64,000 nucleotides of DNA from Pavona decussata (lineage: Eukaryota). Position 1 is the stretch's first letter, and the number at the start of each line of letters is the position of its first letter. This document shows positions 39,401 to 40,893 of the stretch, in pieces. The translations under genes were made by a program, and so were the position numbers. The stretch is from positions 248,001 to 312,000 of the forward strand of contig CDRNST010000099.1 of the NCBI GenBank assembly GCA_977016875.1, read 5' to 3'. Below the pieces are notes generated by a model, which saw nothing but the letters and a program-made list of their open reading frames with translations, had not been told where the DNA came from and did no database searches.

Positions 39401-39456
39401 TTGTTGGTCAAAGACTTTATTTTATTTGGTGGCTCCTAAAGGAGCCGTTTGTTGTT
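39401..39456 (-). promoter_or_regulatory. histone-mRNA-like 3' stem-loop and downstream element of the transposase gene
   Basis: minus strand, 23 nt after TAA: aacaaac GGCTCC TTTA GGAGCC ACCA aataaaat AAAGT ctt TGACCAACAA. Confidence 0.7.
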
Positions 39457-39469
39457 TAACCAAACGAAC

Positions 39470-39691
39470 TTAGTTTGGAGGGTGGAACTGGGCAATGTCA
39501 ACTAACAAGTTATCCAAGTGATCGCCTTGATAAACTTTCCGCCAGATGAACTCGTCAAGATAACTACGCAGTTTGTCACTGTGGGTCCCGTTCATTGCTT
39601 TCAACTTTCTCTTCACCTGACTCCAGACTCCTTTTATGGTGTTTGTGTGGGCTCCTGTGTAAAGATCGACAAAGTTCTTCGAATGGTTCAC
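39470..39691 (-). pseudogene. Merlin/IS1595 DDE transposase C-terminal fragment
   Basis: VNHSKNFVD..TGAHTNTIKGVWSQVKRKLK..YLDEFIWR, typical IS1595 C-terminal motifs; the catalytic E appears as K and the N-terminal part is missing. Confidence 0.9.
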
Positions 39692-39956
39692 ATCGGTCGG
39701 ATTGAAATCGACCGACGGAAACTAAGTTATTGTAATAGCAGAGTATTCATATGCAAAATTTTTTTCCAAAAGTAATTGGTTTTGGCTAATAGACAATGAC
39801 ACAATTATTCATTAGTATGCCTTTCTGTAACTACCAACCAATCACATCTCTGTGAATTCAATCCATCGAAGTGTTTAAAGGCATTACAACTTAGCTCTAA
39901 ATTTCATTAGTGTCATTAAGGCATAGCACTAGAATCCACAACATATCGCGAAAATA

Positions 39957-40803
39957 ATGTCTCAGCGTGTTCTAAAATGTATAATCTGTGGTGGTGACCA
40001 CTCCATATTTCATTGTAATCACAAGTGTGGTGTATGTCATGGTGACGTTCGCCAGTGTTAATGCACGGCCCAGGCTCCACAGAAAAAGAAACGAAAAGGA
40101 GAAACAGCACAAGGGACATGAGCCATCCACATCAGCAGCGCAGTCATCACAGTCCTCTCAGACCACCTCCAACAAGGAGCTACAGCGACTCTACGATAAG
40201 CTGCAAAAAAGGCATGAAAGGGAAGGGGAACCCCTCAGGAACCTGCAGCAGCAGAACCAAGAACTCTCAGGCGAGCTGGAAGACAAAGAGAGGGAGTTAA
40301 AAGAGTCTACTGCTGACAATGAAGAGCTGGCGAACCTGGTGAGAACTAGAGATGAGGCAATCAAGACCCTCCAAAACAAGTTGGCGAATGCCAAAAAGAC
40401 CATCGACAGAGCTGGAGAGGCTTCGCAGAAGCCAAAGAGACCACCCGCAGCAGCAACAACAGAGGGGTGCAAATCCAGTTAGTACCCACAGCCTTGCCGG
40501 AATCCACCAGTGCTACCAGAAAGTCTTGCATATTCTAGCAGAGAATGACTGCAGCATGGCGAATGCTTTTCGGCTGGCCAACTGCCCCAGAAGTACCCTC
40601 CAAGACTTTGTGCCCATAGCAGAGTTGAAGATCGTCGACTCTAGAGAACATGATCTCGCCATCCGCGACCCGTCATCCACGTCAGTTAAAGACCTTGTAG
40701 CTATCTGCAGGAGGCGCCTCAGGCGGTACATACCTCTGATGGCCAACATGCGCAGAGAAGCGAAGCTGTTGCCACTCAAGTTTGATGAGCGTTTCTACGA
40801 GTA
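39957..40803 (+). pseudogene. Zn-knuckle + coiled-coil + CCDC106-like domain protein (Merlin cargo)
   Basis: MSQRVLKCIICGGDHSIFHC..KKKRK; heptad coil; C-terminal GIHQCYQKVL..SMANAF..RSTLQDFVPIAELKIV..KLLPLKF; a stop and frameshifts present. Confidence 0.7.
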
Positions 40804-40804
40804 C

Positions 40805-40893
40805 AACTACAAAATGGCTCTTTTAGTAGCCAGCAAAACAACAAAACAGCTCTTTTAGGAGCCACCAAGTTTGCGAAAGTAAATGACCAACAA
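40805..40893 (+). promoter_or_regulatory. two tandem histone-like stem-loops and downstream element after the cargo gene
   Basis: aaaat GGCTCT TTTA GTAGCC AGCA aaacaacaaaac AGCTCT TTTA GGAGCC ACCA agtttgcg AAAGT aaa TGACCAACAA. Confidence 0.65.

Follow-up and report, generated by a model that had tools for sequence, protein, structure and literature searches.

Both genes of a Merlin DNA transposon in the coral Pavona decussata end in what appear, from their sequence, to be complete 3′ processing signals of the replication-dependent histone type. The element lies at positions 38400 to 41269 of the window, by which we mean the whole 64,000-nucleotide stretch analyzed here (contig CDRNST010000099.1, positions 248,001 to 312,000, of assembly GCA_977016875.1), and it carries the remnants of a transposase gene and of a second open reading frame (ORF), which we call ORF2. 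We consider it probable, at roughly 70%, that a clade of two-gene Merlin elements, in which both intronless genes bear a complete histone 3′ processing signal, uses these signals to make non-polyadenylated mRNAs timed to S phase. In the processing of histone pre-mRNA, SLBP binds the stem-loop, the U7 snRNP (small nuclear ribonucleoprotein) binds the downstream element, and CPSF73 cleaves after the ACCA, while the stability of the mRNA outside S phase is limited by SLBP.

In the window, a histone-type stem-loop comes behind each of the two genes, and after it ACCA, a spacer of 8 nt, and AAAGNNNNTGACCAA. The signal of the transposase gene occupies 39399 to 39451 on the minus strand, where it was recognized by Rfam RF00032, by a model of host histone 3′ ends (R1, described below), and by alignment to those ends. 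Read in the direction of the gene, it consists of CAAAC (39451-39447), the stem-loop GGCTCC-TTTA-GGAGCC (39446-39431), ACCA (39430-39427), the spacer (39426-39419, 8 nt), and the downstream element AAAGTCTTTGACCAA (39418-39404). The stem begins 23 nt past the stop codon of the transposase gene (39470-39472, minus strand). The signal of ORF2, recognized by RF00032 and R1, occupies 40843 to 40895 on the plus strand and is built likewise, with the stem-loop AGCTCT-TTTA-GGAGCC (40848-40863), ACCA (40864-40867), the spacer (40868-40875), and the downstream element AAAGTAAATGACCAA (40876-40890). Just upstream of it stands a decayed stem-loop, GGCTCT-TTTA-GTAGCC-AGCA (40816-40835, the stem-loop itself being 40816-40831, plus strand), which goes back to a tandem duplication of 32 nt and lacks its own downstream element.

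All of these motifs were found where an earlier sequence-only reading of this DNA had placed them, and the Rfam scan that it proposed picks up both 3′ ends. Against a gathering score of 34, the Histone3 family (RF00032) gives the transposase site 35.5 bits (E, 3.9e-8) and the ORF2 site 22.7 bits (E, 0.0024), the low score of the latter being due to the loss of the first stem base, a G-to-A change at a CpG. Better-preserved copies of the element read CGGCTC where the window has TGGCTC and CAGCTC, which bears out the suggestion that these variants reflect CpG decay of CGGCTC. The match of both window sites to the histone 3′ signal is far beyond chance. The window products match the DDE_Tnp_IS1595 and CCDC106-like families and not a core or linker histone, so that the two genes would seem to be histone-like at the 3′ end yet are, to judge by these matches, not histone genes.

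The host's own histone genes provide the most direct comparison. A genome-wide Rfam Histone3 search located them in tandem arrays on C185, C96, and C479 and at dispersed sites. The repeat unit (L072, G000:C185:1407000-1413600) is about 6 kb long, is repeated about 20 times on C185, and holds H1, H2B (minus strand), H2A (plus), H4 (minus), and H3 (plus) in this order, with one stem-loop per gene. Host stem-loops stand 26 to 36 nt behind the stop codons. When aligned, the host 3′ ends read (A/C)AAAC, GGCTC(C/T)-TTTA-(G/A)GAGCC, ACCA, a spacer of 8 to 10 nt, and AAAG(3-4 nt)TGACCAA, a layout shared by the C185 array unit and the dispersed genes. Judging from this alignment and from R1, the conserved motif that follows ACCA in the transposon is the host's histone downstream element (HDE); the sequence-only reading had proposed this comparison. 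Two of its own caveats fall away in the same comparison. It had noted that the top stem pair is C-G or U-G rather than the conserved U-A; host H1 itself has C-G there, and the H2A, H2B, and H4 genes of the array have U·G. It had also noted an AATAAA behind the transposase stem-loop; host H1 has AATAAA in the same spacer.

R1 is a covariance model that was built from 11 host histone 3′ ends only and that includes the downstream element. It matches the 64-kb window exactly twice, at 39399-39451 with 63.8 bits (E, ~1e-11) and at 40843-40895 with 53.6 bits (E, ~2e-9), with no further match in the window at an E value of 1 or less. Host array genes score 66.9 to 68.4 bits with the same model, and duplicated stem-loops that lack a downstream element reach 28.6 bits, so that roughly half of the R1 score is due to this element. 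With the general Histone3 model, the H2A, H2B, and H4 genes of the host array reach 32.9, 32.0, and 27.5 bits, respectively, all three below the gathering threshold. The signals of the transposon are indistinguishable from the ends of host histone genes.

The signals are retained in other copies of the element and in other corals. A fuller copy, L002, encodes a transposase of about 300 amino acids (aa) with one in-frame stop (DDE_Tnp_IS1595, 84.5 bits); its ORF2 stem begins 11 nt past the stop codon, and its ORF2 signal scores 59.2 bits with R1. Subfamily B, with 68 to 81% DNA identity to the window type, has kept both signals (Rfam, 34.0 and 33.7 bits). This subfamily includes a complete Merlin element of 3,508 bp (L073, G000:C132:2668700-2673900, element at 1167-4674) with an uninterrupted 293-aa transposase ORF, the terminal inverted repeat (TIR) GGTAAAAGTGAAGAACAGCTC, a perfect 8-bp target site duplication (TSD), CTCTATTC, a frameshifted ORF2, and a stem 18 nt after the transposase stop; an intact 281-aa version of ORF2 is found in L090. 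The transposase has close relatives in stony corals, at 77% aa identity in Stylophora pistillata, 71% in Oculina patagonica, and about 50% in Acropora and Montipora. The signal follows the transposase stop by 20 nt in S. pistillata (L082; R1, 51.3 bits) and by 21 nt in O. patagonica (L083; 49.2 bits). In two other assemblies it follows by 23 nt at 70% transposase identity (L086; 63.0 bits) and by 10 nt at 52% identity (L084; 59.1 bits). The divergent CCDC106-like gene of L086 also has the signal, 17 nt past its stop, with 58.5 bits.

In every lineage examined, the signal thus lies 10 to 23 nt past the transposase stop, and that of ORF2 lies 11 to 17 nt past the stop where measured and 32 nt past it in subfamily B. 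The mean pairwise identity across lineages is 0.81 to 0.86 in the 53-nt signal, against 0.52 to 0.53 in the next 53 nt and 0.58 to 0.65 in the preceding 53 nt. The signals have therefore been kept in active lineages across coral species while the surrounding sequence diverged. No signal was found in three more distant Merlin families, namely those on C10 and C450 of P. decussata and L085 of another assembly (41% identity).

As for the tandem duplication mentioned above, the 32-nt direct repeat that gives ORF2 two stem-loops (40800-40863 in the window) is present in most copies of subfamily A (L005, L008-L011, L017-L020, and L023), and L002 and L003 have one stem-loop. L008-L011 have the same TSD and flanks and therefore represent one insertion that was duplicated along with its surroundings.

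The arrangement is not confined to Merlin. Among the strongest genome-wide Histone3 matches, 12 belong to one repeat (near-identical sites L036-L047, e.g., G000:C4:304092-304137 and C20:1744615-1744660). The ORF upstream of the stem-loop in this repeat, of which there are at least 12 copies, is a pogo/Tigger transposase (DDE_1 plus HTH_Tnp_Tc5) ending in ...ESEGESDGE. The stem-loop stands 32 nt after the stop, the full signal with downstream element reaches 63.3 bits with R1, and the repeat extends beyond the signal. This family is unrelated to Merlin by its transposase, and its possession of the same 3′ end indicates that the signals arose in two transposon superfamilies. Further non-histone sites have strong matches to both the stem-loop and the downstream element, with 53 to 74 bits: L034 (C93:2135876), L049 (C60:5231129), L052 (C49:3720971), L050 (C67:1509712), L031 (C54:125743), and L032 (C172:587769). 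L049 and L052 have a common ORF (…WKPIGD(R/K)DTFK(M/L)MLFCL…) without a Pfam match. These six sites may belong to additional transposon or host gene families with this 3′ end.

Possibly, an ancestral element captured histone 3′ flanks, for example when it was excised aberrantly or when a gap was repaired close to a histone cluster, and what we see is a relic that now travels along without a role in RNA processing. Capture from host DNA is indeed the likeliest origin, given the closeness of the signals to host histone ends, and the promoter region of the element also has motifs in common with the host H2B-H2A promoter. A relic, however, would require two separate captures, each 10 to 32 nt past a stop codon and each correctly oriented. 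It would also have to account for an identity of 0.81 to 0.86 in the signal next to about 0.52 in adjoining non-coding DNA, for the persistence of the signal down to 52% transposase identity in several coral species, and for an unrelated pogo family with the same arrangement. We therefore regard a functionless relic as quite improbable.

The structure of the window copy bears on a different alternative. We assign the element to Merlin because of its DDE_Tnp_IS1595 transposase, its 21-nt TIRs, its 8-bp TSDs, and its full-length relatives, and this agrees with the identity given by the sequence-only reading. The interval 39401-40893, which had been taken for the transposon, proves to be only the part between the two signals; the full extent follows from the TIRs, the TSD, and alignment to other copies. 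Homology with other copies runs from about 38389 to 41273 (BLAST). The left TIR, GGTAATTTTGAAGAAGAGCTC (38400-38420, plus strand), where the homology between copies begins, is a perfect 21-nt inverted match to the right TIR (41249-41269, minus strand), and the TIRs begin with GG. The left TSD, CAAAATTC (38392-38399), equals the right TSD, GAAAATTC (41270-41277), at seven of eight positions, and perfect 8-bp TSDs flank three independent other copies.

Between these ends lie two divergent genes in an advanced state of decay. The transposase remnant (39470-39691, minus strand) comprises the C-terminal 73 aa of a Merlin/IS1595 transposase (Pfam DDE_Tnp_IS1595, 29.3 bits; cutoff, 27), the N-terminal ~700 bp of the gene having been deleted (compared with L002, positions 800-1500). 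The ORF2 remnant (39958-40803, plus strand), delineated from its ORFs and a Pfam CCDC106 match, has a zinc knuckle at the N terminus and a coiled coil, and toward the C terminus it resembles CCDC106; it carries a frameshift and has a mutated stop codon. Against a CCDC106 cutoff of 30.2 bits, the window reaches 28.4 and L002 reaches 30.1, so that each falls slightly short. The window copy is non-autonomous because its transposase gene has lost ~700 bp and its ORF2 is frameshifted.

Could the two motifs serve the DNA rather than the RNA, as the inverted ends of a nested transposon or as internal transposase binding sites that merely resemble histone stem-loops? Together they do form a 50-nt inverted repeat with 78% complementarity. 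But they lie inside the element, about 1 kb from its left end and about 380 bp from its right end, with the transposase gene between them and the real TIRs and TSD outside. Neither at 39401 nor at 40893 is a TSD present, and all copies of two subfamilies have the sequence beyond both signals in common. We have therefore rejected a nested element, which the sequence-only reading had named as grounds for giving up its own proposal. Moreover, the pogo family and L082-L084 have a single copy tied to the stop codon, with no second one in the DNA examined, and the downstream half of the motif matches the host histone element, for which a transposase site would offer no reason. An explanation at the DNA level is accordingly very improbable.

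Sequences that probably do bind the transposase lie elsewhere. Short subterminal repeats (CCGACAG / CGACTGTC and variants) crowd both arms beside the TIRs, at 38430-38510 and 41080-41250, and are putative binding sites. Similar subterminal repeats in related loci cause spurious Rfam matches to microRNAs (mir-341 and others). Among the sequence runs that we compared, all of which are Logan contigs of unknown library type, one run (X3) has a contig that joins 38398 to 41297 with 31 unrelated letters between them; an element-free form of the locus, or a paralogous site, therefore exists.

We propose that an active lineage encodes the 293-aa DDE transposase and the zinc-knuckle/CCDC106-like ORF2 product and has a histone 3′ signal in place of a polyadenylation signal behind its genes. 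The parts of the signal would be the 16-nt stem-loop for SLBP, ACCA, a short spacer, and a host-specific downstream element that pairs with the U7 snRNA (small nuclear RNA). RNA polymerase II transcripts of both genes would be cut by the U7 snRNP and CPSF73 4 to 5 nt past the stem. This cleavage would leave the mRNAs without a poly(A) tail and dependent on SLBP for their export, translation, and decay, and through this dependence the transposase would be made mainly in the S phase of dividing cells. Such timing could raise the copy number through excision from replicated DNA followed by sister-templated repair, and it would at the same time confine activity to dividing cells.

The same cleavage could also have another purpose. 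Signals that are processed as proposed might serve termination, stopping read-through into host genes, or evasion, providing a stable poly(A)-independent end that escapes deadenylation-based or poly(A)-linked silencing. Other transposons stabilize their RNA 3′ ends in unusual ways, for example with the triple helices of elements for nuclear expression (ENEs), to which we return below, and the transposon genes considered here are intronless. Nothing in these data separates termination or evasion from S-phase timing, and since both need the same cleavage they are not exclusive. As the chief function in place of S-phase timing, we consider termination or evasion unlikely.

Several observations weigh against the proposed use of the signals for S-phase-timed mRNAs. 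The window copy itself is unable to express transposase. The expectation that intact copies would keep the stem-loop with covariation was borne out in its first part, since the motif is kept next to the stop codon in other copies, in a diverged subfamily, and in other corals; as to its second part, the covariation is minimal. While 98.4% of the cells pair, there is one double change, a result equalled by 46 of 500 shuffles; in L086, the stem behind the transposase gene has a compensatory C-G to U-A change. Weak covariation is expected because the stem is protein binding and conserved in sequence. The covariation is too weak to count, and the case rests on conservation. In addition, efficient histone 3′ processing in well-studied animals is favored at histone locus bodies, and the transposon copies are dispersed.

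The sequencing contigs belong to the same side of the balance. Those aligned to 38300-41400 extend over the non-coding arms and not over the genes alone. Contigs of two runs cross the stem-loop; two other runs have contig breaks at this point, the pieces overlapping by 30 nt (k-1), an effect of the de Bruijn graph. Five of nine Logan contigs with family members end 1, 3, 4, 5, and 7 nt past the stem (five runs from three unrelated accession series), which is where transcript ends might be sought. We have rejected them as such, an assembly effect being possible, because L092 ends on the same 30-mer boundary and one end on the ORF2 side lies 15 nt past the stem.

For the U7 snRNA of the host, there is a candidate. 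In a genome-wide scan with the Rfam U7 model, no match exceeded 24 bits. A pattern search for an anti-HDE sequence followed by an Sm-type site found four conserved copies on G000:C62, at 2994740, 3012954, 3026100, and 3053820 (L078-L081, minus strand); two other pattern matches were ordinary sequence or repeats and were rejected. Each of the four has UUGGUUAUGUGCUUUU, then the Sm-type site AAAUUUCUCCAG, then a 3′ hairpin of 6 plus 5 bp; one copy has a one-sided change from U·G to C-G. No Rfam family other than U7 matches this stretch, and U7 does so weakly (14.3 bits; E, 0.37). The 5′ arm of the candidate, which was chosen by complementarity, pairs about equally well with both kinds of downstream element, the energies being -13.3 to -19.5 kcal/mol for the histone ones and -10.4 to -18.7 kcal/mol for those of Merlin and pogo. 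Since complementarity was part of the search, this pairing fits the proposal without being independent evidence for it, and the RNA is a candidate only.

The region between the two genes raises the question of whether more than the 3′ ends resembles a histone locus. In the window, the presumed bidirectional promoter (39692-39957) has an octamer-like TTTGCAT (39751-39757) and CCAAT boxes (39775-39779 and 39838-39842). We compared this region with L073:2476-2750, L086:2700-3000, L083:2700-3000, and the host region L072:2017-2369. Across lineages, the motifs, read toward the transposase gene, follow a fixed order, namely CCAAT boxes, the octamer (A/T)TTTGCATATGA, a CCAAT box, and a TATA box, and subfamily B, L086, and Oculina have conserved the arrangement between the genes. 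To either side of the core of the transposon promoter, GGATC(G/A)AAA is present in one or two copies. The host H2B-H2A intergenic region contains CCAAT, TTTTGCATAT, CCAAT, and two GGATC(G/A)AAA motifs. This last motif occurs twice in the whole 64-kb window and two to three times per host H2B-H2A promoter; of the five transposon promoters examined, four contain it one to two times, and the window copy lacks it. In the number of 8- to 9-mers shared with the host H2B-H2A promoter, the transposon promoters rank in the top 0 to 5% of random window segments, the motifs having been picked after looking. The resemblance between the two promoters is suggestive only, and we keep it as a lead because the motifs were chosen after inspection.

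Conceivably, the Merlin clade has copied the whole expression program of a divergent H2A/H2B pair. This program would consist of the bidirectional promoter (CCAAT, the H2B-type octamer TTTGCATAT, and the GGATCGAAA motif), two intronless ORFs, and two stem-loop/HDE signals. The transposase would then be expressed in S phase only and in dividing cells, Merlin and pogo would have reached the same 3′ end independently, and SLBP and U7 would have non-histone, parasitic substrates. We offer this more tentatively than the function of the 3′ signals and give it somewhat less than an even chance.

Among cellular mRNAs, those of histones alone are regarded as ending in a stem-loop rather than in poly(A). 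If our proposal is correct, the histone 3′-end pathway would here be seen in use by a mobile element for the first time, with a second, unrelated family in the same genome. Cut-and-paste transposons have long been supposed to gain copies through activity during replication, and the signals would provide a concrete mechanism for such a gain. Poly(A)-selected RNA sequencing would miss the transcripts, so that transposon activity in corals may be underestimated. Of practical note, the ORF at an Rfam Histone3 match in a cnidarian genome should be checked before a histone gene is called. A direct test of the idea is within reach, given the 53-nt signal, the candidate U7, and the intact elements present in several coral genomes. 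In the literature that we searched, the coverage of which is incomplete, we found no paper linking histone stem-loops or histone-type 3′ ends to transposons.

The element can be set beside three known systems. The Merlin superfamily is related to the bacterial IS1016/IS1595 group and, as Feschotte is said to have described it in 2004, has TIRs with TSDs of 8 to 9 bp. The elements described here share with it a DDE_Tnp_IS1595 transposase of about 293 aa, TIRs beginning with GG, and an 8-bp TSD. In contrast to it, the present clade adds a second, divergently transcribed gene and the apparent histone-type 3′ signals.

With the replication-dependent histone 3′ ends of metazoans (RF00032 plus HDE, served by SLBP and the U7 snRNP), the transposon signals have in common the 6-bp stem, the 4-nt loop, ACCA, the spacer, and a host-specific downstream element. 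Like those ends, they follow an intronless ORF at a short distance from its stop codon, and their R1 scores are within the range of real host histone genes. The difference is that the transposon genes encode a DDE transposase and a CCDC106-like protein and reside in a mobile, multicopy element. In PMC4604434, histone mRNAs are described as the only known non-polyadenylated cellular mRNAs.

The nearest analogue that we found is the ENE or double ENE of plant and fungal transposon RNAs. ENE triple helices stabilize the 3′ ends of transposon RNAs, and in one case the gene ahead of the helix encodes a hAT transposase (Tycowski, Shu and Steitz 2016, as cited in PMC13541005). ENEs resemble the coral signals in being transposon-borne, cis-acting RNA structures behind a coding region that give intronless transcripts a special 3′-end fate. 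ENEs, however, clamp a poly(A) tail, whereas the coral RNA is predicted to lack poly(A) and to arise through the histone-specific cleavage machinery of the host. What is new in the coral element, then, is the combination of a machinery and a transposon superfamily that are each known already.

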